A stretch of 32,069 nucleotides of DNA, taken from Dimorphilus gyrociliatus. Lineage: Eukaryota > Animalia > Annelida. Under the pieces are notes generated by a model, which saw nothing but the letters and a program-made list of their open reading frames with translations, made no database searches and was not told the origin of the DNA. Made by a program: the position numbers and the translations under genes. This document shows positions 1 through 32,069 of the stretch, in pieces; position 1 is the stretch's first letter, and each line of letters starts with the position of its first letter. The stretch lies in NCBI GenBank assembly GCA_904063045.1, contig CAJFCJ010000129.1:1-32069 (forward strand). Reading direction: 5' to 3'.

Positions 1-360
1 GGCAAAAACCTTTAAAAAGATATGTGTCAAAGTTGTTTCATCTAACCTATTATCAGATGTTGATAAGACACCTGTTGATCATGTACACTTTGTTTAAAAT
101 TATAATTTGGATAAAACATGTATTGCTTTTATGCATCAAGACATATGTAATCCTATTGAAAATTTTTAATTTTAAATCCTTTTGAAAGGACAAAGCAAAA
201 AATTCCTAAAATTACAATACAACAAAGTCCATTGTAGTTTTTGTATATCTGTATTGCTCATTTAGTCCAAATAGAAGATCAAGTTCTTATCTGTAAGCAG
301 GGTTCATATACTTTCCTAAGAGTTGAACAGTTCACAATTTCAATGTTTCAACAGATTCCA

Positions 361-452
361 GGACATTTTGCCTCTAAATGGGACATTTCATCTTTGCCTG
401 GACATTTTATCGCCTTTACCTCAACATTACATCCCTTTAGTATGGACATTTT
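361..452 (+). repeat. Four spaced GGACATTT motifs
   Basis: GGACATTT starts at 361, 381, 400 and 444. Confidence 0.7.
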
Positions 453-470
453 TATGATTGGTTAATTTCA

Positions 471-554
471 TAGGAATTATAATGGTAGAAGTTTAGAAAG
501 ATTTTTATTTTGTAGGAATTATAATTGTTGAAGTTTAGAAAGACTATTTTTTAG
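471..554 (+). repeat. 42-bp tandem duplication (2 copies)
   Basis: TAGGAATTATAAT(G/T)GT(A/T)GAAGTTTAGAAAGA... starts at 471 and 513. Confidence 0.85.
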
Positions 555-966
555 TAGAATTAGATTCTAGAACTGTAAAAAGATATACTGGATAGCTCTT
601 CTTAAGATCAAATTTATTATTCATAATATACTACAGCACCCCACCCATTTTTTTGTTTTGTTTTCATTTCATTTCTATATGTTGATGTTATAGAATCAAA
701 AATTTAAACCTATATTATTATTCACTTTTCAAAGCCCTGCAAGTCATTGTTGGTTTGGTATTCACAAGACTGTTAAAAACTTGTAGTCAACACAGGTAGT
801 GACTAAGACTTGGCACATAGCCAAATCTAAATTATGTTCTTATGTTATATAGAACTTTTTAATCTAGCTGAAGTTGTTCATTCTATTTTTTTTACCCCTT
901 CTGTTTACCTACTTTAAATTGTTAAACATATTTCATAGTATAAAAATTATAATTGCCGAAAATCTC

Positions 967-1400
967 TGTACACTTATGAACTATAGTTTATAGATATTTT
1001 ATAAATGTTACTTACTATATGGTAGAAGTGTTGAAGTAGATGTTGCCTCTAGGGTAGATGGTACCCAATTGCCAGAATCAACCCCTTTTATAGGCAAAGG
1101 ATAAGATGTTACATAACAAACATGTTGACAATAACAACAAGTGTTTATTTACATAAATATGATATAAGAATTGACCCTTGAGGGGTAACCTACACAAAGT
1201 TGTTGTTTACATCACTATTGCATAATATGATAACCCTTGACCCTGTTATCGTATTTTGATAACTGTTGATACAATATACTGATATTACATATGCTAATAA
1301 TGGATGTGACAGAAACCATTCACAAATGAGTGCTTTTACCCTAACCCTAACCCTAACCCAGCCCTTAGCTGTACCTAACCTTTTCCATTACCCCTTACCC
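967..1400 (+). repeat. Dispersed repeat element (probable non-autonomous TE fragment) with a telomere-like tract
   Basis: 967-1212 matches spacer 14759-14968 in direct orientation; mirror copy at 31034-31457. No coding capacity seen; the TE nature is inferred. Confidence 0.75.
1339..1359 (+). repeat. Interstitial telomere-like (CCCTAA)3+CCC
   Basis: CCCTAACCCTAACCCTAACCC, followed by degenerate units (CCTAACC, TTACCCC). Confidence 0.85.
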
Positions 1401-1549
1401 TCCTAACTACAAATCAGTTGCTGTGTTTTTCTGGCTAACCATTTCTCAATCCAAATTTTTGTCCTAAAATTTCTCATTAGTGGATGTTTTCTGTAAAATC
1501 CCACTAATAATCGATGGTTGAATAATTATTTGTTAATCTGTGGGAACAG

Positions 1550-2319
1550 GGTTGCTATACCATGTTCAGAAGAAAACAACTCACCAGATGCTTTGCAAGT
1601 TATAGCAGGTTCTGGAACTCCAGATGCTGAAAATGATTGTAATCAACCAGCTGTTATGGGAGATCCTCATTTCATCCAATTTGTTTTTGACTGGCGATCA
1701 AAGAAGACACAGTATATTAGCTATGATGTTAGTGGACAAGCTAGAGACAAATTTACAAATACTTTGGTTCAATGTGTCCTACTTCATGATTATTATATGA
1801 ATAAAATTATCATTAACCATTCAGGAAAAGAGTATTTATTTGAGAAAAATTCAATTAATTTACCAAATTCAAAAATGTTCAAATGGTTAAATCTTGATTA
1901 TGAAGACAATCAAGATGGAATCAAATCTTCAATTTATAACAATCAGAGTAATGTTGATATTGTATTTTTCCTGCTGGGGGTTGTAGTTAAGTACTGGTCC
2001 AAATAGAACCAAATTACGAGTAAGCCACTTAGATGTAGAGTTGAGTGAGGATCAATATAAAAATGTTAATTTCGAAAATAAGATTTTCAATGGTGTTAGA
2101 TATGGGGGATTGATTGGATTTATTGGAAATCAAAATATGACCTTTCAATATTCTGTTCAAAATTCCAATATTGCAATAATTCAATTGAGAAATTCATTTT
2201 TTCAATCTGAATTGAATAGAAATAGTCCAAAGTGTTGGCATCTCACATTCAAAGATATTTTGGTGCCAAAATCGCCTAAACATTTTGTTCAACAATCAAA
2301 ATCTGACAATAATATATGA
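1550..2319 (+). pseudogene. ITIH heavy-chain C-terminal-like domain; frame-disrupted or split by an unresolved intron
   Basis: Motifs GDPHFIQ and YDVSG lie in one frame (stop at 2006); HLDV, GGLIGFIG and CW lie in the +1 frame (open 1987-2319). The order matches the ITIH C-terminal-like domain. Candidate acceptor AACAG at 1549; upstream exons unresolved. Confidence 0.5.
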
Positions 2320-3646
2320 TGTGTCAAAATAAAATTTTAATGTTCTATTTAATGTCACATGATTTGACATGTTCTTTTAAAAAACTCTTTGTTATGATAA
2401 AATTTCTTGTTTCCTTTAATGTTAAATACAAAAAAACTTTTCCCTCCTAGGGTACAGCTTCAATTTGGAGAAGATAAACTATTTCATCTAATTTGCCTTT
2501 GAGTTAAGGCTGGTTTTTTAGCTGCAATTCTCCCATTTAGAGAACATATCCTCTAAATTGTTGTACAACAAGCAACTTACAGAATAACAGTGTTCTTTTT
2601 TTGTGTTATAAATATAGAAATTTCTGGCTTGTCATGACTCTATTAATGCTTTTCAAATAAACAGAAGTTTAAAATCATTCTTAAACAACTATTTATAATT
2701 CATTAATTTTGAGAGTTTTTTTTGTTGTGAACAAAAATCAATGTAAATTCATAGTTTTTAAAATTTGAATAATTTCGTATGGTAGATTATGTATATTATA
2801 TATCTTGCTGTAATTTTAAAATGATAGGCCTAACTAACAAATTAGGAATTCTAACTGTTAGAAGAATTTGTATAGGCTGTCTATTCAAATAGTGAAAAGC
2901 TGCCTTAAAAAGAAATTTGTTAAAAAAAATTAAGTCTAGGGATGAAGAGGAGCAAGGAGTGACAGAGTAACTGTCCTTCCATATTTGTCTTTCTCAATCA
3001 TTTTCTCTCAATCCTTCTATCTCTCTATGTCACCATCTCTACTTCTAGTGTCTTACTCAATTGGTCCCTATTTCTTGCTATCTGTCTCACACTTTCCTAT
3101 CTTTTAAGAATGACCAAGTATGAAGTAAGAAACTAGCAAGAAATAGAAAAGGATCAAGTAAAAGCGATTGCATCGCTCTTGCTCGACAAATTTATGTGTT
3201 TGAGAGTGTTTTAACAGTACTGGTTTTACTCATACTTTTACACAATTGTTTAAATTGAATAGTTTATTCAAAATAAAATATTAGTGTCACCCAGAAAATT
3301 CTCGCCATTTATGTCTAACCGCTAAAAAAAATTACATAATATGCTTATTCATAAATGTTAATTAATGTCCTAGGTATGTCTATTTAGCTTCAAATTCCCC
3401 ATTATTGTCAATGCATGTTCACAAATTTGACTGTTTTTATATTCTACTTTAAGAATAATAATTAATTGAATCAGTTTATAAATTTAGCATCAGAATATAA
3501 GGAGGAAGCATATGTGATTAATGCATGTTAAGTAGAACAGCATTGTGAATATAATCTAAACTTAGAATTAAAGCATAAATTGATATTTAATTAAACAGCT
3601 TTTAGTTCAAATTCATAAATTTATAGATTAATAAATTGTGATAATA

Positions 3647-5624
3647 ATGCTAGCATTATTCTGTCTATTATTTACTGGGTTTTATTGACGCGCATTGTAC
3701 ATGCACTGCCCTACATAGAACTAGGTGAATACTGCTTATCTCTATCAGTGCTATCTGCACAGTACTACTAGTCTTCTATGTTTGTCTACCAGTTGTTTAT
3801 GCACAGTTTAAATGTCCGCTCAATTCCCAATCAATACCTATTGATGGTACATATGGTGATCCTAACAACTGTGCCATTTATTACCAATGTGTTAATGGAA
3901 CTGCTCATCCTCAAGCTTGTCCACCAGGCCTTCATTTTCAATTTTCCATTCAAAGTTGTAGCTATATCACATGTGTACATCCAGATTTTTCAGATTGTAC
4001 ATCAAAATCATCTATTCAAGATAGGGATGAAGACAAAGTATGCAAAGAATCAAATCAGGATTCTTCTATTCCATGCTATTTAAAGAATGATGACATTGAT
4101 GAATGTTCACCAAATAAAAATGAAACTGTTGCCAATGAAGTTGATTGTAGAATTTATTATCACTGTGTGAATGGTGTTGCTTGGCCACAACGTTGCCCTA
4201 CTGGATACTTTTTCATTCCAAAAATCAATGTCAAAGAGTGCAATGTGAAACTGTGTGTTCCTTTGAATGAAGCAAACTGTGCAATTCGTGGAGGATGGTC
4301 GGAATGGTCAACATGGAGCAATTGTAATGCACCTTGTGGAGAGGAAGGGATCAGAAATAGAACAAGAGAGTGTAATAATCCTCCTCCTTCAAATGGTGGA
4401 TTATACTGTCCAGGTAGCTCAATCGACTTCGACCAATGTGAAACATTGGTTTGCTCAAAAAGTCCAGCATTTATGGTATCTTTATCAAGATCTCAAACTG
4501 TGAGCTATGGAAATGTGAATTGGACATCTATTGATATAAATAACCAAGGTATATTTGATGAATCAGATAATAGTCTAAGAATTAGCCAATCAGGAATGTA
4601 CTTCTTTTCAATAACGGCATCACTTGAAAGCTATAGTACAACTTCACTAATGCTTGGCAGTACAGGAAGAAGCATTGGTTTGTTAAAATATGGTAATTCA
4701 AGTGTTACAACTGATACTACAACTAGAGCTGGATTGTTCACACTGAATAGATTCAATAGGCCATATATCTTTCAGCATCATCCTTACTCAGATCTAATTG
4801 GAAGTGAAAATGGAAAAGAAACATCATGGTTGGGTTTTTACTACAATACTGAAAACTATTTATTTGCTGCTAGTGACAATTCAATGAATGTTAGTGGTGA
4901 AGTAGAGTTACCAAGTATTATTGCAATGAGAAGTTTTTCAATAATTGGTAATAGATTTAGAGCATTTGAAGAAGGCTATTATTTTATAAACTTTGGATCA
5001 TCGTCTATAGATTCTAGAAATTCTAAAATCAGGTTTTATACTAGTAATGGTGGTTTAGGCCCACATACCTATATTCAGATTACTAACAATATTACTTCAC
5101 CAGTTATGCAATCATTAAGTTTTATTCAGAGATTGAATGCAAATGAAGATATTTATTTACGAAATGATGCTGGCTTTCAATATTCAGATTCTAATTATCT
5201 AACATATCTATGTTTATTCAAGCTAAATGAAAGTTTACCAATTTTTTCAATTGCCACAAACAATGCTATATGTTCTCCCAGTTATTCAACAGTAACTTTC
5301 AGAAGAAGTCCTATTATTGACACAGAGAACAGCTGGTATAACAGAAGCACATTTAAAGTTCCTGTTACTGGTATGTATTACATTGCTTTTAATATACCAA
5401 GTGAAGATGAAAGGAATAAAATTGAGATCTACATTGATATCAATGGATACAAAAAGACAAGAGTCTTCAAATCAAATAATTTAGTTGAAGATAGATATCC
5501 TGGTTATGCATCTGGTGGAGTACTAATGAAATTGTCAGAAAATGATCATCTACAGTTAAAATACCTTGGTTGTATAGCTGATCATGGAAATGAAGGAGCA
5601 TTAACAATAATATTTATACCTTGA
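3647..5624 (+). CDS. Secreted CBM14 (peritrophin-A) x2 - TSP1 - C1q-like x3 protein (~635 aa)
   Basis: The frame is stop-free 3729-5624, 146 codons more than the ORF track shows. CBM14 motifs: DPNNCAIYYQCVNG...CPPGLHF and DCRIYYHCVNG...CPTGYFF. TSP1: GGWSEWSTWSNCNAPCGEEGIRNRTRECNNPPP. Three C1q-like repeats (F..SGMYFF, EEGYYFI, FKVPVTGMYYI). Best start model: exon 3647-3678, intron 3679-3748, exon 3749-5624; the start is less certain than the body. Confidence 0.85.
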
Positions 5625-5754
5625 GTGTCTAGTTTACATTAAATAAATATTGAAATAATCACGATTTGTGATGAAACATTTAAATGTTTTGTAGTTCTAT
5701 TTTACTGCTCTAGTTAATCTTGTGTGCCAACATTTATCATTATTGCTTGTTCAG

Positions 5755-6158
5755 ACAAGTTGATAGATAGACAAAAACTTTGGCTTCCAAATTTTATCAT
5801 CAGTATAAGTTTTTTGAATATATTCCACAAGATCACTGTATATATTCTTTTTTAAAAATTCAATCTTGATTTGGTGAAATTTTAAAGTAATGAATTATTT
5901 TGGAAGATATGAAAGACACATCAACTAGATTCTAATTGAGATAAGTCTTTAACATGGTTTCTGAATTTTATTGAAATATCTTTAGCCAATCTCTTTCCAG
6001 ACTTATCCTAAGTTTCTAAAGTAAGTTTCTTTAATTTGAGTCTTGCTTTTATAACCTGTTCCAGGTTGTTTCCTTCATTGGAGTAGGTATGTTCTCTTTT
6101 TGTAACAAACTTTGTACCCTTTTGGAGAACATATGCCGGGCATGTTTGTTTCTTTGAC
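5755..6158. other. 404-bp segment present only in the left arm
   Basis: Arm match ends at 5754 (vs 26701) and resumes at 6159 (vs 26679); the right arm has 21 unrelated bp (26680-26700). Confidence 0.9.
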
Positions 6159-7401
6159 CTTATAGTTTTATGTCCCAACCCCCTATTTTCCTCCCCTGGG
6201 ATTGTAGGTAAGCACTGGTCCAAATCCCTGAATTAGGTATAATCCACTTAGAAGAGATGTCAATGGAGGAAAGATGGATATAACTGTATTGTAAAGTAAT
6301 ACAGGCTCCAGGGATGGCATATTTAGCAATAGCAATGTAAACAGCAACAATATGTAACACTTATCTTTTGCATATAAATAAAACTGAAAATAATTCGATA
6401 GCATGGCAAATAGTACCAATATGGAGGAGAGCTAACTCCAAATTCGGCAAAATGTTCCAGAGAGAAAGAGGGGCAGGTCAAGAGAAAAAGGGGCTGGTAA
6501 CCAAGTTGTGCAGCAGAAGGGAGGACAGCAATGGCTTATGCTGATGCCATCTATCACATCTAGTGGAATGAAAGATGTGATGGACAAAGCATGAACCAAC
6601 ATGGAGGATGCGACCAAGGTAACTCATGAGCAATATTTCGGATAGATAGACAGGAAAGTGTGAAAATCAAATCTGATGGATCTGTTTTGTATTTCAACGT
6701 TTTCTGGCAATTTAACCAACTGAAGGATTTCATCCAAATAAAAAGCCAGAATCACTTAAGACTCTTGAAATGTAAGATTTCTTATTCTTATTTTAGACTT
6801 GACCATAACAGATGGTGCCACTTTGGAATTAACAAAGGAACAAACAATATAGAAAAAATGCATGTCAAACTTATTACATCTTATTCAAAAACAGTAATAT
6901 ATTGTGTGAAGTTAACAATTATCATTCAATTCTTTCAGTCTCCTATCCTTGTAGAATTGCTAATGTGAAGAAAGAGATGAGGAAGATGAACATCAGGAAC
7001 AAGAATATCAATACTGGTCAAAAAACCTGTAATTAGGACATTGGATTCCAATTTTCAATTCACTGTTAAAAACTACTGTAGACTGTAAGAAAAAAATGAA
7101 ATGTATTTATGGTCACGTGATATATGAATTTTTTAGTGAATTGTTAAATGTTGATAAAAGAGAAAGTGGATTATGCTTGAAATGCTACAATAAATCACAA
7201 TCTTGTAAAAAAAAACAAATAATATTGTCTTCTCTCTTAGTCTCTATTATTTTTTGAATGTGATATTTATTGAAATACTGCAATTTGCTTACAATAATTT
7301 TATATTGGCTCTGAAGAGGAGTGTTTAGCAAGTTTCTAATAATATTGAACAGTTTAAAGTCTTTTTCGAAATCCGTTTTGACGCTATCTCTATCAGGCTG
7401 A

Positions 7402-7776
7402 TCTTTAAAGTCTCAAGGCATTAACTCTCTGACTAAATTGCTAGACGATTGCAGTAAATTACAAACATTCTCTTTAAGAACTTGTTGCAGTTCATAAGTG
7501 AAAATTATTTTTACTGAATCTGCCTTATCCTACCAGGATTATAAATGCCTAGGTAACCTATTAAGGGAAATTTTATACTTGGAAGAGATAAACTTAATAA
7601 TTAAAGTTTCCAGTGAGTTTGGACAAGGAATTGAAACTTTTTGTAATGGACTAAAATCCTATTCAAATACTCTATTAAGAGTAAACTTTTCTCATTGTTC
7701 ACTGTATAAAGACCAAGTTAATCACTTATATAAGTTTTTAAACAAATTTCAGCTGATAAAATACTGCTTATTGTAA
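7402..7776 (+). pseudogene. RNI-like leucine-rich-repeat remnant
   Basis: LLDDCSKLQTFSL, LEEINL and LLRVNFSHCSL fit LxxLxL-type repeats. Stops at 7399 and 7495; no start or splice context. Confidence 0.5.
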
Positions 7777-7854
7777 GAGATTTGAATGTACTTAATAGAC
7801 AGAAACAATTGATAAATAGTATAAAGAATTTCTTGACTGGAGAGATTTTAATTC

Positions 7855-10041
7855 TCACTCTGGTAAAAAATGGGAAGAGTGTAGGTCACATGATAATTTA
7901 TCATTAAAATTGTGAAATCTCTTAAATATTAGGTCCAAGATAATAGTTCCCTTTTGAAAATTAACACCTACTCTACAAATAAAAGTTATTGTTTTCATTG
8001 CTGCTTCATTTTGAGAATTCGATATGCAATATTGTTTAAAATCCATAAAATCTCCTCTGCCAAGGGAATATGAACTACTTATGGTATCTTCATCAACCAC
8101 AAACTTCTTATTAATATAGATCTTTGGATTAATAAGACGTATCATAAATAGGTCATTGTCCTGTAATTCAATTTCGAAATATGATATTTTTGATTGAGAA
8201 GGAATGCAACCATATATAAATTCGTCAAAAAAATTATACATTGCACAAAACTGGTAATCTTTAGTCTCTAGAACTGTAATCTTTCTACCATCTGAAACAA
8301 GCAAAGAAAAAAGAAACAGAGTTATAGATAACCTGTGATCAGATATTTTTTTACCTTTGTGATTCACTTGAACATCATTTACAATATAACTATAATGATT
8401 TCTGAACAAAATTTGATAAACATTTACATATAAATCTGTTTGAATTGAAATATAAGATAATGATTTAGCTGTTGGTTTTCCAAAACCAAATTTGACTTGT
8501 TCTAAAGCGAATTCAAACCAGAAATCATTCCATTTATGGCAATCAATCAATGATTGCGAAATATTGAATTTTACAGTGTTGCTCTTTGAATCATGAACAT
8601 TTAAACTTGATTCTTCCATGTTGTCCTTTATGCTGTCAAGTTTTAGTGAAATGTAAGGTTCATATTTGTTAGCCAAGCGTAAAGTTAGAGAAGAACAACC
8701 AACATTTCCAGTTTCCTGACCTTTAACCTTGAAACTCATTGCTGTAAAATTTTTAAATAAATGTTTCGGTAAGTGATAATAAACGAAATTTTTGTCTTGG
8801 ATGCTATAAACTTTGCCATCAGTTTCTAGTCAAAAGAAAAAATGGAAGATACTTCAAAATAAAATCATTTTACAAAATATATTTTTGTACTTATAGTAAA
8901 AATTTCTATTCTCTCTAATCCGACTTGACCTAGAAAAGTTTCTACAATTGTCAACTTAATCGAATCTTCAATGTCAGCATTTCCAGAGTAGTTGAAACAA
9001 GATCTTATATTATCCATTGAAATTTCAACTGATTGAGTTTGGCCCGAACTCCAATTTATGAACATAGTTTTAACTGCACTCTTTTCATAGCTATTAAGAC
9101 AAAACAGTATTAATTATGAAGTATAAAGAAACAAAATAATGTGGATTACTCATTTGTGAGGCAAAAGAATTCTGGTTTTGTAGGAAATGCAAATGTAATT
9201 TGTATGAATTGTTCATTGCATTGAGGTAAAGATGTAAATTGCAATGGATCACTCTCTAAACACTCTATTTGCCAATGATTGATAGCACTTTCATCAATTG
9301 CATTCTCACATTCACCAAGAGATGCCCCGCACTTTGCTCCTAAATGCATCAGAGCTACATCTGTATACAGCATATCTTCAACCGTCACTTCATCTGTAAA
9401 ATATCATCATTTGAAACAAACTGTTTAGGTTTTACTGTTTTCTTTACCGTCATACGCAAATAAAAGAATTGATTGAAAGCCAATATTGCTTTGTGTCTCG
9501 TCAACTGCATTTGGCTTTAAAGTTACAGAGGAAGTTGCCAATCCACTATTATTTCTGGGTAGAAAACACGTCTCATGCAAATTCAAAGAAACTCTTTGCG
9601 TGTTCTTATCAAATACAATATCCAATCCAAAAATCTTTTTGACATTGTCATTGTTTCTTTGAGTTAGGCATATATCAATAATATCGTATTGCTTTTGAAA
9701 GGTAATTTTAATCCACTCTTCAATACATGATACAGGAGAACAAGATGAAATCCATTCAAGTTTGCTTTGCCATCTTGGTTTTAGAGCGTTTGAACAGATA
9801 AAACTTGTTTTGACAGAAGACGCTGTACACTTGGCTGAATGTTTTACATCAGCAATATTTATAAGTTTTCCATCTATAATAAAATAATTGATGTATAGAA
9901 TATTGGTTTAGTATGAATGAATAACCATAGATTTTTGTCACTACTACCTCTTGACACTACTCCATTTGCAGTTGATGCATTAAATTTATATAGAATTATA
10001 TAACAAAGGGCAATTGATACAGACAGCATTCTCCAGAGCAT
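7855..10041 (-). CDS. Secreted protein: two F5/8 type C-like lobes + FAMeT-like domain (644 aa, 5 exons); left-arm copy
   Basis: Mirror of the model at 22798-24984; ATG complement at 10039-10041. The track ORFs 9425, 9146, 8865 and 7855 correspond to its exons. Confidence 0.8.
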
Positions 10042-10718
10042 TGTGAACCTTGCAACAATTAAGTAAAGTTAATTAACATTTTTGAAGGTTCTACATCCAT
10101 CTTTCATATATGTTTGCGTTGATTAATTTACACTTTTAATTAATAATTGATTTCACGAGGCAATTTAAATTTAACTATAAACTTTTCAATAATGACAGTA
10201 ATTGCTTCATTACTATTTAATTCATTATTCAATTATTAACATTAAACAATGGAATTTTTAATAAATCAGCATTTTCAACAATTTTAAAGAGCAACGCAGC
10301 CTTTTAACAAACATATTTTTAGAATTTTATTTCAATAATTTGTGAAATTGGTATCAATCATCAAATGAGTGATATACAGTATATATGTAGGGGGAATAGG
10401 GATCTTGTCGAAATTTTCCAACATCTCTAGAAAGATTGTTCCTACTCCTGCAGTAAGGAAAAGTGGAAAATGAAGAAAAACGAAAGCGAGAAAACTTTTT
10501 TAAAAAGATCTCTTAATTGTAGTTTTTATTTATTCAAAACAATTTATACTGTTTATAAAAGAGATAGCTTAAAATGTGAGTAGAGAATGACAAACATCTC
10601 TTACAAAATAATAAAAACAAACCTCTATAGGAATCGACAGACAAATGCTTTTACTATAGATTTAAGTAAGAAAGCTACTTGTTCTATACTAAGTGCCAAG
10701 CTAAAAATTTTTCAACAG

Positions 10719-11639
10719 CTATACTTGATTGTTACAATTGTTGGTGTTGCAATAGCATCTTGTAAATTCTACTCCAACTAACATTGTTGTTTGGCAACCA
10801 ATTGTTTGAGCCACTGTTGCGCAAGCTCTCGCAACAATGTGTAAGTTTGTAGTATTTGCTGAAAGATAAATGAAAATTAGACTGTAAAATAGAAATGGAA
10901 ATCCTCAAAATTTTACATATCGATTTTAAAATTGTAGTCAAACATCCATTTTTCGGTTGGCAACGTTTCAAAGGTTCAAAATTATTAACACAGTCGGTGT
11001 TGAAGGAGTTTGTACAAGAATAACAACTTGTTGCTAATAGAAACAATAAAATATAGATATTTTTACATTCATTTTCAAATAGGCCTAACCTGGAGATAAG
11101 TCTGGCGAAGCTGTTTCTTTGCCTATTTGTTTATATACAAAAGTAAAATGCATATCGTTCAGCTAAGAAGGAAAATTCCTGTTAAAACTATAATCTAAAA
11201 AACAAACCAGATGGCGCTGTAACATCAGTTTCATTATTACACTTGTCAGATTTACAATGGCATGTAGTAACGTTTAAACCAAGTACAATTGTTTCTTTGC
11301 AGCCATCTGGCTGTACAGTTGGTGAACAAGATCTCATTACAGCTGAAATTGCAGTTGAAAAGTAAAAAGAGTGTATTAGATTTGAATAACGAAATTGTTA
11401 AACTAATTACAATTTCCTTTTGAAATAGTTGTTGTACAACTTCCAGCTGTTTGACACATAGCTACTGGTGAAGAAAGACTTTCGCAATAGTTATTCATTA
11501 TACTGTTACAGTTGTAACAGGATAGTCCTTGACATAAACAAAGAGAAGGTATGAAAACAATTACATTTTCATTTACGTAAAAAATCTACAAACCATGAGA
11601 AAATGGCAGCAAAATAGATAAAATAACGGCTATAAGCAT
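10719..11639 (-). CDS. Double Ly6/uPAR (three-finger, quiver-like) protein (195 aa, 6 exons); left-arm copy
   Basis: Mirror of the model at 21200-22120; ATG complement at 11637-11639. Confidence 0.82.
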
Positions 11640-14611: not shown

Positions 14612-14758
14612 TATTGTGGTTGTTGATTTGGAAACAATAAAAAATGATAAGGCATTATGAATATTTGAATATTGTAATGAAATGAAAAGATGCAATAGAA
14701 GGATTATTATATTATCTAATAACCAAAGAAGAGAATAGAAAAGAAAATCTATGAAGTA

Positions 14759-19127: not shown

Positions 19128-21199
19128 TCTTTGTTGTTGTTATTGTTTTAGTAAAACATTGAATGAATATCATGAGAATGGTGAAAATTTTCATTTGTGA
19201 TTAACTTTATATCAATACCAGGGAATGCTAGAGAAAGAAAGTAAGTTACAAAAATATGGTGCATACTAGCACGTGTTGAAAATGAGTTTAGTATAGATAC
19301 AACTATAATAAACAGTTTATTATTTTGATGAATATGGAATATAGGATTAGAACAACTGCTAAGATTAAATATATTTTTAGGAATATTACAGTCTTTTCTA
19401 TCAAAAGTGCAATATAAATATACATAATTACATTCTCAATCAGAGTAAAAATGAGTTGGTCAATATGTTAGAGTTCTCAATTTAGGATATTATGTCGAAT
19501 TGATAAATATTCTAAAAGGGAGATTTGGGATAAATATACTAGTTTTGATGTTTAGATGATATTATAAATTATATCATCATTTTAAATCCTACACCTGTGC
19601 AGGTGTATATAATATCTTGCTAATCAACTGATAATTTATAAAAAAAAAAAAAATTTTCCTTTACAATTGACTAATACAATAGAAACAGTTCCAGATAAAG
19701 GACATAAAATCAGCTGTTATAAAAGTGAAGGTCAATTATATAGGTCTTAAGGTTAGGGGCTAGCACATTTTTAAGGACTGGCAATTCCCCAATTGCAAAC
19801 ACACTATAAGCTTGTTTTGGGTTGGTGTAGGTATTAGGAACTACTATCTAAAATAACAGACCCTAGCCTAAGCTATTACTGTATTTCAAACTAAGTTCTA
19901 AGTTTATATATAAGCCAAAAAAAACTTCCACAAAAGCTTCGAAAGATCCCAAGATAGAATGCTTTAAGTCTTAAGTGTTAGGGATTTGTACAACCTGTAA
20001 GGAATGGCTATCCCCTTAATGCACACACTGCAAACTTTTAGGTTTCTGGTGAATGTGGCTGTTAGGAATAACTAACTTAAGTAGTCCTTCAAAGCCTAAG
20101 CTACAATGTATCTCCAACACCACAAATTCAAAGACTCAACAAAAATTAAGAGAATCTGAATTGCAGGAACTCTTCTACTTCTCACGTTCTCTAAAATCTC
20201 ACAATATTTTGTGGGTATTCCCCCTTTTTCAAGTGAGAAGGAAAAGTGTCAAAAGATGTATTTCTTTATTTTGTTACAGACCATTTGAATTGACAATAGA
20301 TGATTCATTTCAACATAATTTCGCAGAATTTAAGTTCTGTGCCATTAAAAGATAATCTCTTTGACAATTTGGTGAATACTCCACATCAAACTCAATAAAT
20401 CTCACAAAAATTTTTTTCATAGAGTTTGAAGAAGATTTGAGTCCATCACATATCACTTAGAATACAGTTATATTTTTCTTACATTTTGGTTCTGGTTGCA
20501 GTGGCACATGTTTGGCATGTGGCCCTAATCTTAAAATTATATTTTATATGTGTGATATAGCGAGTCTTTCATATTTTTGTTACATGAGAATTATGGTATT
20601 CCACTTGGAGAGTTACATTGTTGTGTCAAACTCACAATATGGAAAATTTATGCATTCTATGCCTAGATGAAAATCATGCAAATTGTAAAAGTTTCCTCTA
20701 GGCGAAAATATTTAAAGAGGAGAGAAAAAGTTTCAAATTTTCTACTTGAACAGTTAAGAATATTCAATAAAGAAATGTTTCAAATCATTGATTGTTTAAA
20801 CACTGTTCAAAACTTGAAAGAATTTTTCTAGAATTGATATGGCAATGAGGAAAGATCTTTTTAAACTATGCGAATAGAATTAAAATTGACCCTATCAGAT
20901 GAAATCTATTCGTGTACAACAGTTAAGACAATCAGAAAGCAAAAATTCAATACCTTCTTAATTCCATACAACACATTTGGCCCCTTAGTGTAAACCTCTC
21001 CAATTACAAATCCATATTTACTTTACCTATTGAAAAGACTTGAATACAATCGAATATATTCATATCCTGTTGTTGAACTATTGAACTCTGAAAGATTACG
21101 TAATAAAAATGCTAAAAATACTGAAGTTTCTCCTTTGTCACCTTGAAAGAAGCATTAATGCGTTTTGCATTTTGAGCACAACATTCGAAGGAAAGAAAC

Positions 21200-22120
21200 A
21201 TGCTTATAGCCGTTATTTTATCTATTTTGCTGCCATTTTCTCATGGTTTGTAGATTTTTTACGTAAATGAAAATGTAATTGTTTTCATACCTTCTCTTTG
21301 TTTATGTCAAGGACTATCCTGTTACAACTGTAACAGTATAATGAATAACTATTGCGAAAGTCTTTCTTCACCAGTAGCTATGTGTCAAACAGCTGGAAGT
21401 TGTACAACAACTATTTCAAAAGGAAATTGTAATTAGTCTAACAATTTTGTTATTCAAATCTAATACATTCTTTTTACTTTTCAACTGCAATTTCAGCTGT
21501 AATGAGATCTTGTTCACCAACTGTACAGCCAGATGGCTGCAAAGAAACAATTGTACTTGGTTTAAACGTTACTACATGCCATTGTAAATCTGACAAGTGT
21601 AATAATGAAACTGATGTTACAGCGCCATCTGGTTTGTTTTTTAGATTATAGTTTTAACAGGAATTTTCCTTCTTAGCTGAACGATATGCATTTTACTTTT
21701 GTATATAAACAAACAGGCAAAGAAACAGCTTCGCCAGACTTATCTCCAGGTTAGGCCTATTTGAAAATGAATGTAAAAATATCTATATTTTATTGTTTCT
21801 ATTAGCAACAAGTTGTTATTCTTGTACAAACTCCTTCAACACCGACTGTGTTAATAATTTTGAACCTTTGAAACGTTGCCAACCGAAAAATGGATGTTTG
21901 ACTACAATTTTAAAATCGATATGTAAAATTTTGAGAATTTCCATTTCTATTTTACAGTCTAATTTTCATTTATCTTTCAGCAAATACTACAAACTTACAC
22001 ATTGTTGCGAGAGCTTGCGCAACAGTGGCTCAAACAATTGGTTGCCAAACAACAATGTTAGTTGGAGTAGAATTTACAAGATGCTATTGCAACACCAACA
22101 ATTGTAACAATCAAGTATAG
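21200..22120 (+). CDS. Double Ly6/uPAR (three-finger, quiver-like) protein (195 aa, 6 exons)
   Basis: Exons 21200-21245, 21312-21428, 21497-21631, 21717-21749, 21806-21922 and 21981-22120 (588 nt). Signal MLIAVILSILLPFSHG; domains LSCYNC...CHCKSDKCN and TSCYSC...CYCNTNNCN. Confidence 0.85.
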
Positions 22121-22797
22121 CTGTTGAAAAATTTTTAGCTTGGCACTTAGTATAGAACAAGTAGCTTTCTTACTTAAATCTATAGTAAAAGCATTTGTCT
22201 GTCGATTCCTATAGAGGTTTGTTTTTATTATTTTGTAAGAGATGTTTGTCATTCTCTACTCACATTTTAAGCTATCTCTTTTATAAACAGTATAAATTGT
22301 TTTGAATAAATAAAAACTACAATCAAGAGATGTTTTTAAAAAAGTTTTCTCGCTTTCGTTTTTCTTCATTTTCCACTTTTCCTTGCTGCAGGAGTAGGAA
22401 CAATCTTTCTAGAGATGTTGGAAAATTTCGACAAGATCCCTATTCCCCTTACATATATACTGTATATCACTCATTTGATGATTGATACCAATTTGACAAA
22501 TTATTGAAATAAAATTCTAAAAATATGTTTGTTAAAAGGCTGCGTTGCTCTTTAAAATGGTTGAAAATGCTGATTTATTAAAAATTCCATTGTTTAATGT
22601 TAATAATTGAATAATGAATTAAATAGTAATGAAGCAATTACTGTCATTATTGAAAAGTTTATAGTTAAATTTAAATTGCCTCGTGAAATCAATTATTAAT
22701 TAAAAGTGTAAATTAATCAATGCAAACATATATGAAAGATGGATGTAGAACCTTCAAAAATGTTAATTAACTTTACTTAATTGTTGCAAGGTTCACA

Positions 22798-24984
22798 ATG
22801 CTCTGGAGAATGCTGTCTGCATCAATTGCCCTTTGTTATATAATTCTATATAAATTTAATGCATCAACTGCAAATGGAGTAGTGTCAAGAGGTAGTAGTG
22901 ACAAAAATCTATGGTTATTCATTCATACTAAACCAATATTCTATACATCAATTATTTTATTATAGATGGAAAACTTATAAATATTGCTGATGTAAAACAT
23001 TCAGCCAAGTGTACAGCGTCTTCTGTCAAAACAAGTTTTATCTGTTCAAACGCTCTAAAACCAAGATGGCAAAGCAAACTTGAATGGATTTCATCTTGTT
23101 CTCCTGTATCATGTATTGAAGAGTGGATTAAAATTACCTTTCAAAAGCAATACGATATTATTGATATATGCCTAACTCAAAGAAACAATGACAATGTCAA
23201 AAAGATTTTTGGATTGGATATTGTATTTGATAAGAACACGCAAAGAGTTTCTTTGAATTTGCATGAGACGTGTTTTCTACCCAGAAATAATAGTGGATTG
23301 GCAACTTCCTCTGTAACTTTAAAGCCAAATGCAGTTGACAAGACACAAAGCAATATTGGCTTTCAATCAATTCTTTTATTTGCGTATGACGGTAAAGAAA
23401 ACAGTAAAACCTAAACAGTTTGTTTCAAATGATGATATTTTACAGATGAAGTGACGGTTGAAGATATGCTGTATACAGATGTAGCTCTGATACATTTAGG
23501 AGCAAAGTGCGGGGCATCTCTTGGTGAATGTGAGAATGCAATTGATGAAAGTGTTATCAGTCATTGGCAAATAGAGTGTTTAGAGAGTGATCCATTGCAA
23601 TTTACATCTTTACCTCAATGCAATGAACAATTCATACAAATTACATTTGCATTTCCTGCAAAACCAGAATTCTTTTGCCTCACAAATGAGTAATCCACAT
23701 TATTTTGTTTCTTTATACTTCATAATTAATACTGTTTTGTCTTAATAGCTATGAAAAGAGTGCAGTTAAAACTATGTTCATAAATTGGAGTTCGGGCCAA
23801 ACTCAATCAGTTGAAATTTCAATGGATAATATAAGATCTTGTTTCAACTACTCTGGAAATGCTGACATTGAAGAATCAATTAAGTTGACAATTGTAGAAA
23901 CTTTTCTAGGTCAAGTCGGATTAGAGAGAATAGAAATTTTTACTATAAGTACAAAAATATATTTTGTAAAATGATTTTATTTTGAAGTATCTTCCATTTT
24001 TTCTTTTGACTAGAAACTGATGACAAAGTTTATAGTATCCAAGACAAAAATTTCGTTTATTATCACTTACCGAAACATTTATTTAAAAATTTTACAGCAA
24101 TGAGTTTCAAGGTTAAAGGTCAGGAAACTGGAAATGTTGGTTGTTCTTCTCTAACTTTACGCTTGGCTAACAAATATGAACCTTACATTTCACTAAAACT
24201 TGACAGCATAAAGGACAACATGGAAGAATCAAGTTTAAATGTTCATGATTCAAAGAGCAACACTGTAAAATTCAATATTTCGCAATCATTGATTGATTGC
24301 CATAAATGGAATGATTTCTGGTTTGAATTCGCTTTAGAACAAGTCAAATTTGGTTTTGGAAAACCAACAGCTAAATCACTATCTTATATTTCAGTTCAAA
24401 CAGATTTATACTTAAATGTTTATCAAATTTTATTCAGAAATCATTTTAGTTATATTGTAAATGATGTTCAAGTGAATCACAAAGGTAAAAAAATATCAGA
24501 TCACAGGTTATCTATAACTCTGTTTCTTTTTTCTTTGCTTGTTTCAGATGGTAGAAAGATTACAGTTCTAGAGACTAAAGATTACCAGTTTTGTGCAATG
24601 TACAATTTTTTTGACGAATTTATATATGGTTGCATTCCTTCTCAATCAAAAATATCATATTTCGAAATTGAATTACAGGACAATGACCTATTTATGATAC
24701 GTCTTATTAATCCAAAGATCTATATTAATAAGAAGTTTGTGGTTGATGAAGATACCATAAGTAGTTCATATTCCCTTGGCAGAGGAGATTTTATGGATTT
24801 TAAACAATATTGCATATCGAATTCTCAAAATGAAGCAGCAATGAAAACAATAACTTTTATTTGTAGAGTAGGTGTTAATTTTCAAAAGGGAACTATTATC
24901 TTGGACCTAATATTTAAGAGATTTCACAATTTTAATGATAAATTATCATGTGACCTACACTCTTCCCATTTTTTACCAGAGTGA
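22798..24984 (+). CDS. Secreted protein: two F5/8 type C-like lobes + FAMeT-like domain (644 aa, 5 exons)
   Basis: Exons 22798-22891, 22966-23391, 23446-23689, 23749-23948 and 24014-24984 (1935 nt, frame-consistent GT-AG). Hydrophobic N-terminus; C.AS...W...I.I.F pattern twice; FKVKG...LIDCHKWNDFWFEF...VKFGFG resembles Methyltransf_FA. The gene model is firmer than the domain names. Confidence 0.8.
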
Positions 24985-25062
24985 GAATTAAAATCTCTCC
25001 AGTCAAGAAATTCTTTATACTATTTATCAATTGTTTCTGTCTATTAAGTACATTCAAATATC

Positions 25063-25437
25063 TTACAATAAGCAGTATTTTATCAGCTGAAATTTGTTTA
25101 AAAACTTATATAAGTGATTAACTTGGTCTTTATACAGTGAACAATGAGAAAAGTTTACTCTTAATAGAGTATTTGAATAGGATTTTAGTCCATTACAAAA
25201 AGCTTCAATTCCTTGTCCAAACTCACTGGAAACTTTAATTATTAAGTTTATCTCTTCCAAGTATATCATTTCCCTTAATAGGTTACCTAGGCATTTATAA
25301 TCCTGGTAGGATAAGGCAGATTCAGTAAAAATAATTTTCACTAATGAACTGCAACAAGTTCTTAAAGAGAATGTTTGTAATTTACTGCAATCGTCTAGCA
25401 ATTTAGTCAGAGAGTTAATGCCTTGAGACTTTAAAGA
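25063..25437 (-). pseudogene. RNI-like LRR remnant; right-arm copy
   Basis: Mirror of 7402-7776; the TAA at 7495 is TTA (Leu) here (25342-25344). Confidence 0.5.
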
Positions 25438-26830
25438 TCAGCCTGATAGAGATAGCGTCAAAACGGATTTCGAAAAAGACTTTAAACTATTCAATATTAT
25501 TAGAAACTTGCTAAACACTCCTCTTCAGAGCCAATATAAAATTATTGTAAGCAATTGCAGTATTTCAATAAATATCACATTCAAAAAATAATAGAGACTA
25601 AGAGAGAAGACAATATTATTTGTTTTTTTTTACAAGATTGTGATTTATTGTAGCATTTCAAGCATAATCCACTTTCTCTTTTATCAACATTTAACAATTC
25701 ACTAAAAAATTCATATATCACGTGACCATAAATACATTTCATTTTTTTCTTACAGTCTACAGTAGTTTTTAACAGTGAATTGAAAATTGGAATCCAATGT
25801 CCTAATTACAGGTTTTTTGACCAGTATTGATATTCTTGTTCCTGATGTTCATCTTCCTCATCTCTTTCTTCACATTAGCAATTCTACAAGGATAGGAGAC
25901 TGACAGAATTGAATGATAATTGTTAACTTCACACAATATATTACTGTTTTTGAATAAGATGTAATAAGTTTGACATGCATTTTTTCTATATTGTTTGTTC
26001 CTTTGTTAATTCCAAAGTGGCACCATCTGTTATGATCAAGTCTAAAATAAGAATAAGAAATCTTACATTTCAAGAGTCTTAAGTGATTCTGGCTTTTTAT
26101 TTGGATGAAATCCTTCAGTTAGTTAAATTGCCAGAAAACGTTGAAATACAAAACAGATCCATCAGATTTGATTTTCACACTTTCCTGTCTATCTATCCGA
26201 AATATTGCTCATGAGTTACCTTGGTCGCATCCTCCATGTTGGTTCATGCTTTGTCCATCACATCTTTCATTCCACTAGATGTGATAGATGGCATCAGCAT
26301 AAGCCATTGCTGTCCTCCCTTCTGCTGCACAACTTGGTTACCAGCCCCTTTTTCTCTTGACCTGCCCCTCTTTCTCTCTGGAACATTTTGCCGAATTTGG
26401 AGTTAGCTCTCCTCCATATTGGTACTATTTGCCATGCTATCGAATTATTTTCAGTTTTATTTATATGCAAAAGATAAGTGTTACATATTGTTGCTGTTTA
26501 CATTGCTATTGCTAAATATGCCATCCCTGGAGCCTGTATTACTTTACAATACAGTTATATCCATCTTTCCTCCATTGACATCTCTTCTAAGTGGATTATA
26601 CCTAATTCAGGGATTTGGACCAGTGCTTACCTACAATCCCAGGGGAGGAAAATAGGGGGTTGGGACATAAAACTATAAGTATAAGTATTTTGATATATTG
26701 CTGAACAAGCAATAATGATAAAGGTTGGCACACAAGATTAACTAGAGCAGTAAAATAGAACTACAAAACATTTAAATGTTTCATCACAAATCGTGATTAT
26801 TTCAATATTTATTTAATGTAAACTAGACAC

Positions 26831-28807
26831 TCAAGGTATAAATATTATTGTTAATGCTCCTTCATTTCCATGATCAGCTATACAACCAAGGTATTTTAAC
26901 TGTAGATGATCATTTTCTGACAATTTCATTAGGACTCCACCAGATGCATAACCAGGATATCTATCTTCAACTAAATTATTTGATTTGAAGACTCTTGTCT
27001 TTTTGTATCCATTGATATCAATGTAGATCTCAATTTTATTCCTTTCATCTTCACTTGGTATATTAAAAGCAATGTAATACATACCAGTAACAGGAACTTT
27101 AAATGTGCTTCTGTTATACCAGCTGTTCTCTGTGTCAATAATAGGACTTCTTCCGAAAGTTACTGTTGAATAACTGGGAGAACATATAGCATTGTTTGTG
27201 GCAATTGAAAAAATTGGTAAACTTTCATTTAGCTTGAATAAACATAGATATGTTAGATAATTAGAATCTGAATATTGAAAGCCAGCATCATTTCGTAAAT
27301 AAATATCTTCATTTGCATTCAATCTCTGAATAAAACTTAATGATTGCATAACTGGTGAAGTAATATTGTTAGTAATCTGAATATAGGTATGTGGGCCTAA
27401 ACCACCATTGCTAGTATAAAACTTGATTTTAGAATTTCTAGAATCTATAGACGATGATCCAAAGTTTATAAAATAATAGCCTTCTTCAAATGCTCTAAAT
27501 CTATTACCAATTATTGAAAAACTTCTCATTGCAATAATACTTGGTAACTCTACTTCACCACTAACATTCATTGAATTGTCACTAGCAGCAAATAAATAGT
27601 TTTCAGTATTGTAGTAAAAACCCAACCATGATGTTTCTTTTCCATTTTCACTTCCAATTAGATCTGAGTAAGGATGACGCTGAAAGATATATGGCCTATT
27701 GAATCTATTCAGTGTGAACAATCCAGCTCTAGTTGTAGTATCAGTTGTAACACTTGAATTACCATATTTTAACAAACCAATGCTTCTTCCTGTACTGCCA
27801 AGCATTAGTGAAGTTGTACTGTAGCTTTCAAGTGATGCCGTTATTGAAAAGAAGTACATTCCTGATTGGCTAATTCTTAGACTATTATCTGATTCATTAA
27901 ATATACCTTGGTCATTTATATCAATAGATGTCCAATTCACATATCCATAGCTCACAGTTTGAGATCTTGATAAAGATACCATAAATGCTGGACTTTTTGA
28001 GCAAACCAATGTTTCACATTGGTCTAAGTCGATTGAGCTACCTGGACAGTCTAATCCACCATTTGATGGAGGAGGATTATTACACTCTCTTGTTCTAGTC
28101 CGGATCCCTTCCTCTCCACAAGGTGCATTACAATTGCTCCATGTTGACCATTCCGACCATCCTCCAGGAATTGCACAGTTTGCTTCATTCAAAGGAACAC
28201 ACATTTTCACATTGCACTCTTTGACATTGATTATTGGAGTGAAAAAGTATCCAGTAGGGCAACGTTGTGGCCAAGCAACACCATTCACACAGTGGTAATA
28301 AATTCTACAATCAACTTCATTGGCAACAGTTTCATTTTTATTTGGTGAACATTCATCAATGTCATCATTCTTTAAATACCATGGAATAGAAGAATCCTGA
28401 TTTGATTCTTTGCATACTTTGTCTTCATCCCTATCTTGAATAGATGATTTTGATGTACAATCTGAAAAATCTGGATGTACACATGTGATATAGCTACAAC
28501 TTTGAATGGAAAATTGAAAATGAAGGCCTGGTGGACAAGCTTGAGGATGAGCAGTTCCATTAACACATTGGTAATAAATGGCACAGTTGTTAGGATCACA
28601 TATGTACCATCAATAGGTATTGATTGGGAATTGAGCGGACATTTAAACTGTGCATAAACAACTGGTAGACAAACATAGAAGACTAGTAGTACTGTGCAGA
28701 TAGCACTGATAGAGATAAGCAGTATTCACTTAGTTCTATGTAGGGCAGTGCATGTACAATGCGCGTCAATAAAACCCAGTAAATAATAGACAGAATAATG
28801 CTAGCAT
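26831..28807 (-). CDS. CBM14 x2 - TSP1 - C1q x3 protein; right-arm copy with an apparent 1-bp frameshift near 28599
   Basis: Mirror of 3647-5624. CATATGTGATCC here versus CATATGGTGATCC on the left breaks the first CBM14; this may be a consensus error. Confidence 0.75.
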
Positions 28808-30129
28808 TATTATCACAATTTATTAATCTATAAATTTATGAATTTGAACTAAAAGCTGTTTAATTAAATATCAATTTATGCTTTAATTCTAAGTTTAGAT
28901 TATATTCACAATGCTGTTCTACTTAACATGCATTAATCACATATGCTTCCTCCTTATATTCTGATGCTAAATTTATAAACTGATTCAATTAATTATTATT
29001 CTTAAAGTAGAATATAAAAACAGTCAAATTTGTGAACATGCATTGACAATAATGGGGAATTTGAAGCTAAATAGACATACCTAGGACATTAATTAACATT
29101 TATGAATAAGCATATTATGTAATTTTTTTTTAGCGGTTAGACATAAATGGCGAGAATTTTCTGGGTGACACTAATATTTTATTTTGAATAAACTATTCAA
29201 TTTAAACAATTGTGTAAAAGTATGAGTAAAACCAGTACTGTTAAAACACTCTCAAACACATAAATTTGTCAAGCAAGAGCGATGCAATCGCTTTTACTTG
29301 ATCCTTTTCTATTTCTTGCTAGTTTCTTACTTCATACTTGGTCATTCTTAAAAGATAGGAAAGTGTGAGACAGATAGCAAGAAATAGGGACCAATTGAGT
29401 AAGACACTAGAAGTAGAGATGGTGACAAAGAGAGATAGAAGGATTGAGAGAAAATGATTGAGAAAGACAAATATGGAAGGACAGTTACTCTGTCACTCCT
29501 TGCTCCTCTTCATCCTAGACTTAATTTTTTTAACAAATTTCTTTTTAAGGCAGCTTTTCACTATTTGAATAGACAGCCTATACAAATTCTTCTAACAGTT
29601 AGAATTCCTAATTTGTTAGTTAGGCCTATCATTTTAAAATTACAGCAAGATATATAATATACATAATCTACCATACGAAATTATTCAAATTTTAAAAACT
29701 ATGAATTTACATTGATTTTTGTTCACAACAAAAAAACTCTCAAAATTAATGAATTATAAATAGTTGTTTAAGAATGATTTTAAACTTCTGTTTATTTGAA
29801 AAGCATTAAAGAGTCATGACAAGCCAGAAATTTCTATATTTATAACACAAAAAAAGAACACTGTTATTCTGTAAGTTGCTTGTTGTACAACAATTTAGAG
29901 GATATGTTCTCTAAATGGGAGAATTGCAGCTAAAAACCAGCCTTAACTCAAAGGCAAATTAGATGAAATAGTTTATCTTCTCCAAATTGAAGCTGTACCC
30001 TAGGAGGGAAAAGTTTTTTTGTATTTAACATTAAAGGAAACAAGAAATTTTATCATAACAAAGAGTTTTTTAAAAGAACATGTCAAATCATGTGACATTA
30101 AATAGAACATTAAAATTTTTTTTGACACA

Positions 30130-30889
30130 TCATATATTATTGTCAGATTTTGATTGTTGAACAAAATGTTTAGGCGATTTTGGCACCAAAATATCTTTGA
30201 ATGTGAGATGCCAACATTTGGACTATTTCTATTCAATTCAGATTGAAAAATGAATTTCTCAATTGAATTATTGCAATATTGGAATTTTGAACAGAATATT
30301 GAAAGGTCATATTTTGATTTCCAATAAATCCAATCAATCCCCATATCTAACACCATTGAAAATCTTATTTTCAAATTAACATTTTTATATTGATCCTCAC
30401 TCAACTCTACATCTAAGTGGCTTACTCGTAATTTGGTTCTATTTGGACCAGTACTTAACTACAACCCCAGCAGGAAAATACAATATCAACATTACTCTGA
30501 TTGTTAAAATTGAAGATTTGATTCCATCTTGATTGTCTTCATAATCAAGATTTAACCATTTGAACATTTTTGAATTTGGTAAATTAATTGAATTTTTCTC
30601 AAAAAATACTCTTTTCCTGAATGGTTAATGATAATTTTATTCATATAATAATCATGAAGTAGGACACATTGAACCAAAGTATTTGTAAATTTGTCTCTAG
30701 CTTGTCCACTACATCATAGCTAATATACTGTGTCTTCTTTGATCGCCAGTCAAAACAAATTGGATGAAATGAGGATCTCCCATAACAGCTGGTTGATTAC
30801 AATCATTTTCAGCATCTGGAGTTCCAGAACCTGCTATAACTTGCAAAGCATCTGGTGAGTTGTTTTCTTCTGAACATGGTATAGCAACC
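30130..30889 (-). pseudogene. ITIH-C-terminal-like region; right-arm copy with many 1-bp deletions
   Basis: Mirror of 1550-2319; the ORFs are fragmented by homopolymer shortenings. Confidence 0.45.
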
Positions 30890-31033
30890 TGTTCCACAGA
30901 TTAACAAATAATTATTCAACTCGATTATTAGTGGGATTTTACAGAAAACATCCACTAATGAGAAATTTTAGGACAAAATTTGGATTGAGAAATGGTTAGC
31001 CAGAAAAACACAGCAACTGATTTGTAGTTAGGA

Positions 31034-31457
31034 GGGTAAGGGGTAATGGAAAAGGTTAGGTACAGCTAAGGGCTGGGTTAGGGTTAGGGTTAGGGTAAAG
31101 CAGCTCATTTGTGAATGGTTTCTGTCACATCCATTATTAGCATATGTAATATCAGTATATTGTATCAACAGTTATCAAAATACGATAACAGTGTCAAGGG
31201 TTATCATATTATGCAATAGTGATGTAAACAAAACTTTGTGTAGGTTACCCTCAAGGGTCAATTCTTATATCATATTTATGTAAATAAACACTTGTTGTTA
31301 TTGTCAACATGTTTGTTATGTAAATCTTATCCTTTGCCTATAAAAGGGGTTGATTCTGGCATTGGGACCTCTACTCCAGAGGCAACATCTACTTCAACAT
31401 TCTACCATATAGTAAGTAACATTTATAAATATCTATAATATAGTTCATAAGTGTACA
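31034..31457 (-). repeat. Mirror copy of the dispersed repeat, including (GGGTTA)3+GGG at 31075-31095
   Basis: Reverse complement of 967-1400 with small deletions. Confidence 0.8.
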
Positions 31458-32069
31458 GAGATTTTCGGCAATTATAATTTTTATACTATGAAATATGTTT
31501 AACAATTTAAAGTAGGTAAACAGAAGGGGTAAAAAAATAGAATGAACAATTAAGCTAGATTAAAAAGTTCTATATAAATAAGAATAATTTAGATTTGGCT
31601 ATGTGCCAAGTCTTAGTCACTACCTGTGTTGACTACAAGTTTTTAACAGTCTTGTGAATACAAACCAACAATGACTTGCAGGCTTTGAAAAGTGAATAAT
31701 TATAGGTTTAAATTTTTGATTCTATAACATCAACATATAGAAATGAAATGAAAACAAAACAAAAAATGGGTGGGGTGCTGTAGTATATTATGAATAATAA
31801 ATTTGATCTTAAGAAGAGCTATCCAGTATATCTTTTTACAGTTCTAGAATCTAATTCTACTAAAAATAGTCTTTCTAAACTTCAACAATTATAATTCCTA
31901 CAAAATAAAAATCTTTCTAAACTTCTACATTATAATTCCTATGAAATTAACCAATCATAAAATGTCCATACTAAGGGATGTAATGTTGAGGTAAAGGCGA
32001 TAAAATGTCAGGCAAAGATGAAATGTCCATTTAGAGGCAAAATGTCCTGGAATCTGTTGAAACATTGAA

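Follow-up and report, generated by a model that had tools for sequence, protein, structure and literature searches.

A gene-bearing palindrome filling a contig of the annelid Dimorphilus gyrociliatus: inverted segmental duplication or joined haplotypes?

Contig CAJFCJ010000129.1 (C129) of the Dimorphilus gyrociliatus assembly GCA_904063045.1 pairs with itself in inverted orientation over nearly its whole length, and its two arms carry a lectin gene and a gene combining TSP1 and C1q domains. Does this contig portray a palindrome that exists in the chromosomes of the worm, or did the assembly join two versions of a single locus? The contig was analysed in its entirety (positions 1-32069, referred to below as the window, with zero N inside) and compared with the assembly to which it belongs, which totals 77.9 Mb in 349 contigs. 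A contaminant origin was discarded: the best protein matches of the large TSP1/C1q exon are D. gyrociliatus paralogues, and a 280-bp repeat of the arms recurs on about 40 other contigs, including the megabase-sized C5, so that the contig is worm DNA. Judging from the sequence, we lean towards a real, young inverted segmental duplication located in a repeat-rich cluster of lectin and C1q genes.

Pairing of the arms was established by an inverted-repeat search and by self-BLAST, both of which gave two blocks. The left arm occupies positions 339-14567 on the plus strand and the right arm positions 18272-32069 on the minus strand. They are separated by a spacer of 3,704 bp (14568-18271) that is not self-complementary and that the right arm joins without a break. 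In the outer block, positions 339-5758 pair with 32069-26698 at 98.5% identity (29 mismatches and 48 gap openings by self-BLAST), and in the inner block of 8.4 kb, positions 6159-14567 pair with 26679-18272 at 99.38% identity, with 51 mismatches and one 1-bp gap. A first-pass annotation made from the letters of the sequence had described a palindrome covering almost the whole window, with arms of at least 13.8 kb around a 3.7-kb spacer, and both searches return these coordinates. Alignment likewise recovers the lone 1-bp indel that the annotation had placed near position 7285 in the inner 8.4 kb, and the identity of about 99% that it had estimated by eye agrees with the computed figure. The layout is thus observed directly: with arms 13.8-14.2 kb long as assembled, the contig has the several-kilobase length and the high identity of large gene-conversion palindromes of the sex-chromosome type. 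Of this length, about 11.5 kb is solid in both arms (3,027-14,567 paired with 18,272-29,428). The inner boundary is sharp, since the last 41 bp of the arms are identical and the alignment shows noise-level similarity beyond them. At the outer limit, homology reaches the final base of the contig, position 32069 pairing with position 339. A giant transposon with long terminal inverted repeats was considered as the source of this arrangement and rejected, as the arms hold host-type lectin and C1q genes and their sequence is found nowhere else in the genome.

The lectin gene that straddles the inner boundary reveals which arm is the original. Exons were matched to domain families one at a time. 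In the right arm, the gene runs on the minus strand with the order SUEL-SUEL-SUEL-PAN. Its first two exons (18301-19011) lie within the arm and mirror those of the left copy, and its third SUEL exon (17822-18106, minus strand; PF02140, E 3e-19) and its PAN/apple-domain exon (17529-17759, minus strand; PF00024, E 3e-9) are found in the spacer: the gene reads through the 18271/18272 boundary. The left copy, also recognized by family match, comprises SUEL exons 1 and 2 (13828-14538, plus strand; exons 13828-14193 and 14195 to about 14538). It ends 30 nt past the GT donor, inside the intron of about 52 nt that follows SUEL exon 2, and then gives way to unrelated sequence. Read on the plus strand, the exon ends in ...GTTACAG/GTATG, and the break at 14567/14568, in the junction region 14538-14597, follows 30 nt after the donor. 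Because the lectin gene is intact across 18271/18272 and cut at 14567, the spacer and the right arm are ancestral, the left arm is a derived copy and 14567/14568 is the novel junction. The first-pass annotation had chosen this same junction as the one to test, and the continuity of the gene across the other boundary upholds its choice.

The surroundings of the novel junction were inspected for signs of how it was made. The left part of the spacer (14568 to about 17000) contains transposon fragments and the right part holds the downstream lectin exons; the spacer has no internal inverted repeat and, apart from the transposon fragments, is unique in the assembly. No microhomology was found at 14567/14568 on the one side that is readable. 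At this point intron sequence meets 190 bp without any repeat match, and a repeat-driven false overlap does not account for a junction in which unique sequence abuts unique sequence. No part of the spacer was found on other contigs, not even about 40 bp from its first 170 bp, so the assembly offers no alternative left neighbour for it. This absence is weak evidence, as the outer flanks of the palindrome are missing likewise. The open reading frames (ORFs) that cross the junctions, at 14195-14611 and 18228-18644, had no match in a large protein collection or in an exact-product contig look-up. The clean consensus at 14567/14568 was rejected as proof that reads span it, since Illumina polishing anchored on nearby variants could clean the site either way.

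We then compared the arms base by base. Over the whole arm, the alignment shows 45 indel events and 99 substitutions. Inward of arm position 3,339 it has 82 substitutions (49 transitions and 33 transversions) and only four indel events. Between 3 and 14.5 kb along the arm the distribution of substitutions is fairly even, and variants continue up to 41 bp from the inner boundary. The largest difference is a 400-bp segment present in the left arm only (5759-6158, plus strand), in place of which the right arm holds a 21-bp filler at about 26680-26700. The arms are thus two distinct sequences. D. gyrociliatus mates brother with sister within the cocoon, and its allelic divergence is expected to be low. 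The arms diverge by 0.66-1.3% in substitutions. This is four to eight times the heterozygosity published for the whole genome, 0.16% (PMC7854359 supplement), a mean that local heterozygosity may far exceed.

The small indels have a different distribution. All except one of the 45 are bases absent from the right arm, and nearly all of these fall within its last 2.6 kb: counted per kilobase from the outermost one, there are 21, 14 and 6 events, then about zero. The 280-bp repeat, which lies in this region, was compared with four other copies in the genome; the left arm agrees with them at 19 of the 25 differing columns, the right arm at 3 of 25. At the indel sites it is the left arm that matches the repeat family, and the errors therefore belong to the right arm. 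The outer end of the right arm (29516-32069, minus strand) is unpolished: it has accumulated about 40 errors of the deletion type, and none of its variants is convincingly true. The left arm is well polished up to its outer end. None of the readings considered here accounts for Quiver having left the right end unpolished.

How might such a structure have formed? If the inverted duplication is real, the ancestral locus would have consisted of the spacer and the right arm (14568-32069), with the lectin gene uninterrupted across 18271/18272. At least 11.5 kb beside the spacer would have been copied in reverse and joined to the far end of the spacer at 14567/14568, with no visible microhomology, either through fold-back or template switching or through the end-joining of a break. 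Both routes would fit an asymmetric spacer that runs on into one arm only, a breakpoint indifferent to genes and a blunt join. They also require an outer junction, which is not on the contig. By falling 30 nt into the intron, the join would have deprived the left lectin copy of its third SUEL exon and of its PAN exon; the TSP1/C1q gene and the other genes of the arms would have been duplicated whole. The copies would then have accumulated about 0.7% substitutions, with 1.3% in the C1q exon, and a single replacement of 400 bp against 21 bp. From the contig we infer that both junctions probably lie on one molecule, which may have formed by one of the routes above. Multiple displacement amplification, the usual source of inverted chimeras with a spacer, is not applicable here because the DNA was unamplified (PMC7854359).

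Parallels for these steps exist elsewhere. Inverted duplications produced by fold-back or template switching (inverted duplication-deletions and DUP-TRP/INV-DUP rearrangements; PMC11293582) resemble C129 in that an inverted copy is joined a few kilobases from its origin, with an asymmetric spacer continuous with one arm only and breakpoints unrelated to gene structure. In those rearrangements a second (outer) junction or a triplicated segment is expected, and C129 contains neither. Closer at hand, another contig of this genome, C135 (30 kb), carries a palindrome with arms at 5223-8838 and 11897-15511 that are 100% identical, a spacer of 3,058 bp and different outer flanks. A copy of a 660-bp high-copy element sits in this spacer and another adjoins the outer edge of the left arm. 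A fold-back chimera cannot yield such a structure, and bounded inverted duplications therefore do occur in the assembly. C135 and C129 share the inverted duplication, a transposon-bearing spacer of about 3 kb and the small size of the contig. They differ in that the C135 arms are 3.6 kb long, identical, flanked and spannable by one long read, whereas those of C129 measure at least 11.5-14 kb, have diverged and lack flanks. Among six contigs of similar size probed from their starts, C135 included, no other whole-contig palindrome was found.

Several observations weigh against a real duplication, and most of them favour a different explanation: the locus would be single-copy, the arms would be two alleles from the pooled worms, and a chimeric PacBio read or some other mis-join at 14567/14568 would have connected one of them, in reverse, to the far end of the spacer. 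We regard this as a serious alternative, although a less probable one. C129 is an island that is palindromic throughout: no contig of the assembly overlaps its ends, the arms have no unique outer flank on either side and remain unbounded, and both ends of the contig lie at most 338 bp from one same arm coordinate, in non-repeat sequence. The quality of 29516-32069 suggests one or a few unpolished reads, and also that few reads tie right-arm-type sequence to that stretch. This overhang of single-read quality begins where the true differences between the arms stop, and it has the look expected where a haplotig closes into homozygous sequence. The assembly is 4-7 Mb above the genome-size estimates (PMC7854359), so some false duplication must be present. 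It was built from unamplified DNA of adult females, sequenced as RS II reads, with PBcR, Quiver, Pilon, HaploMerger2 and SSPACE-LongRead (PMC7854359); HaploMerger2 would presumably not remove two haplotypes lying inside one contig. There is also a precedent, since gene-bearing palindromes in the first assembly of Adineta vaga (AV13) proved to result from phased haplotypes that had been scaffolded in error (PMC8494291). These too were found in an invertebrate draft assembly and had arms that differed at about the allelic level; C129 differs from them in having no scaffold gap (no N) and a junction that lies in continuous long-read consensus. Finally, the arm sequence has no second representation in the assembly, as expected if both alleles are already on this contig.

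Joined alleles face difficulties of their own. The mis-join presumably needs a rare inverted chimera between two molecules of the same locus, formed in unamplified DNA and surviving the chimera trimming of PBcR. The true left neighbour of the spacer should overlap the spacer on another contig, and none does. The divergence of the arms is several times the genome-wide heterozygosity, and the variants that persist up to the last 41 bp before the inner boundary rule out the version in which one arm is a rare allele. A high-copy repeat as the cause of the contig break was also considered and is unsupported, as bases 1-460 have no other match in the assembly.

A second alternative keeps both junctions and dispenses with the duplication. 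The spacer could be inverted in one of two haplotypes, both junctions being real and located on different chromosomes, and a switch between haplotypes during assembly would have produced a palindrome that exists on no molecule. This would explain why both junction regions are clean and why the arms differ as two haplotypes would, and it would provide a real 14567/14568 junction. We nevertheless think it unlikely. The sequence beyond the other side of the spacer should have been assembled and should overlap the spacer, and it is absent; no inverted repeat capable of mediating an inversion is present at the spacer ends; and the scenario requires a rare variant in addition to a mis-assembly.

That a single molecule was read twice, through a missed SMRTbell adapter or by passage of template and complement strands in one pass to give a hairpin read, would suit the near-equal arm lengths typical of such reads but is barely credible, because the centre, which should be empty or adapter, is 3.7 kb of genomic DNA that is not palindromic and includes exons and transposon fragments, and because the arms, which should copy one molecule, differ by about 80 substitutions and by the 400-bp/21-bp replacement, which polishing cannot create. 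The artefact proposed in the first-pass annotation, a fold-back chimeric read polished with both haplotypes, is accordingly disfavoured in its single fold-back form by the spacer and the replacement; as a haplotype mis-join through a chimeric read it is the less probable alternative described above.

Taking C129 as an inverted duplication, we compared it with the best-known gene-bearing palindromes. Mammalian sex-chromosome palindromes have unique flanks, are physically verified and conserved between species, and undergo gene conversion that keeps their arms about 99.97% identical. C129 is like the human Y palindromes P1-P8 and the X palindromes in its long inverted arms of high identity, its unique kilobase-sized spacer and its intact duplicated genes. 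It departs from them in that its arms are unbounded and about 99.3% identical and that one gene is truncated at the inner boundary. The comparison is an analogy only. A broader proposal is that the palindrome of C129 is real and belongs, with C135, to a group of inverted duplications in this compact genome that are young, bear genes and have spacers of about 3 kb containing transposons. The C129 palindrome would lie in a subtelomere-like, repeat-rich region, as suggested by a telomere-type tract in each arm, and such duplications would form a regular route by which secreted lectin and C1q genes are copied and diversify in a habitual inbreeder with little allelic variation. We consider this rather improbable.

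The two outcomes have different consequences. A real duplication would provide a clearly defined case, from an annelid, of a gene-bearing palindrome that is both large and young, with an ancestral arm distinguishable from the derived one and a breakpoint located to the exact base. It would also show how recognition genes of the lectin and C1q kinds are being copied in an annelid genome that is among the smallest. Inverted segmental duplications and palindromes are known from many genomes, and C129 is at best an annelid addition to them. Were C129 an artefact, a false duplication of about 14 kb and a false truncated lectin gene would stand in the public assembly of D. gyrociliatus, and other whole-contig palindromes of this genome would need read-level checks before interpretation.

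Besides the lectin gene, the arms hold a gene that encodes TSP1 and C1q domains (PF00090 and PF00386) in one large exon at 4167-5624 on the plus strand, mirrored at 26831-28288 on the minus strand. Both copies are open, with 19 nucleotide differences between them (1.3%; 13 nonsynonymous and 6 synonymous) that are concentrated in the N-terminal third, mostly in the first 131 residues. This divergence is about twice that of the inner 8.4-kb block (0.6%). The best protein matches are D. gyrociliatus DgyrCDS14773 (65%) and DgyrCDS9668 (49%), and relatives of the gene also bear the chitin-binding domain CBM14. In the large protein collection only paralogues at 65% or less were found, with no copy of the exon itself and nothing at 90% or above, and the gene may be unannotated.

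Other ORFs of the arms are less readily classified. A 294-amino-acid ORF at 7855-8739 (minus strand), with its mirror in the right arm, has no assigned family and has paralogues on C42 and C265 at 80-86% DNA identity. The ORF groups between 6.3 and 13 kb gave no match in the family search, and a language-model look-up returned only a weak lead to FAMeT-like domains. A 102-amino-acid ORF at 6660-6968 is open in the left arm and has Q20 changed to a stop in its right-arm mirror. The genes of the arms are members of families that are expanding locally, and other contigs carry paralogues at 65-86%. The first-pass annotation had counted at least four duplicated multi-exon genes and had inferred that the palindrome holds extracellular recognition genes. 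This character is borne out by the TSP1, C1q, SUEL lectin and PAN domains; as for the number, two genes are backed by domains (the TSP1/C1q gene and the SUEL lectin) and the remaining ORF groups lack a family match. No RNA genes were found in the window.

The outer parts of the arms contain repeats shared with other contigs. The 280-bp repeat lies at 967-1247, with a mirror at 30975-31231 and a diverged copy in the spacer at 14759-14971, and its copies on the roughly 40 contigs are 90-97% identical. This suggests a young family resembling short interspersed nuclear elements (SINE) or miniature inverted-repeat transposable elements (MITE); no tRNA or Rfam match was found in the window. An interstitial telomere-type tract is found at 1339-1410 and, mirrored, at 31024-31095, 1.0-1.3 kb from each contig end. 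It begins with three perfect CCCTAA units and then becomes degenerate, and its G-rich strand faces outward in both arms. A telomere or a linear mini-chromosome was rejected on this basis, as no terminal telomere repeats were found and the only tract is short, degenerate and internal. The block of repeats to which the tract belongs is also present on C81, C98 and other contigs, which hints at a subtelomere-like setting.

Searches of the assembly also brought out repetitive arrangements on other contigs. On C98 and C112 there are tandem units, about 6-7 kb long, that have short pieces in common with window positions 10108-10758 and 11962-12056 and switch orientation within each contig. C112, for example, has copies on the minus strand at 280, 5897 and 12581 and one on the plus strand at 20899; these switches are additional head-to-head junctions on small contigs. 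C137 starts with a 2.29-kb element (1-2289) that has terminal inverted repeats of 634 bp. Copies of 99-100% identity on C248, C215 and C317 give it the appearance of a foldback-type transposon that was active recently. C122, C133 and C134 begin with a common segment of 6.3-6.5 kb at 99.3-99.8% identity, which on C133 adjoins a satellite (7618-9622) that repeats about every 171 bp; as there are three versions, the segment does not simply represent two alleles. C126 is built as a direct tandem array whose period is about 11.4 kb, its copies at 1, 13366 and 24777 being 99-100% identical. Its unit, with a GC content of 36%, also occurs at the end of C27 (655963-661974), and the array may be ribosomal DNA.

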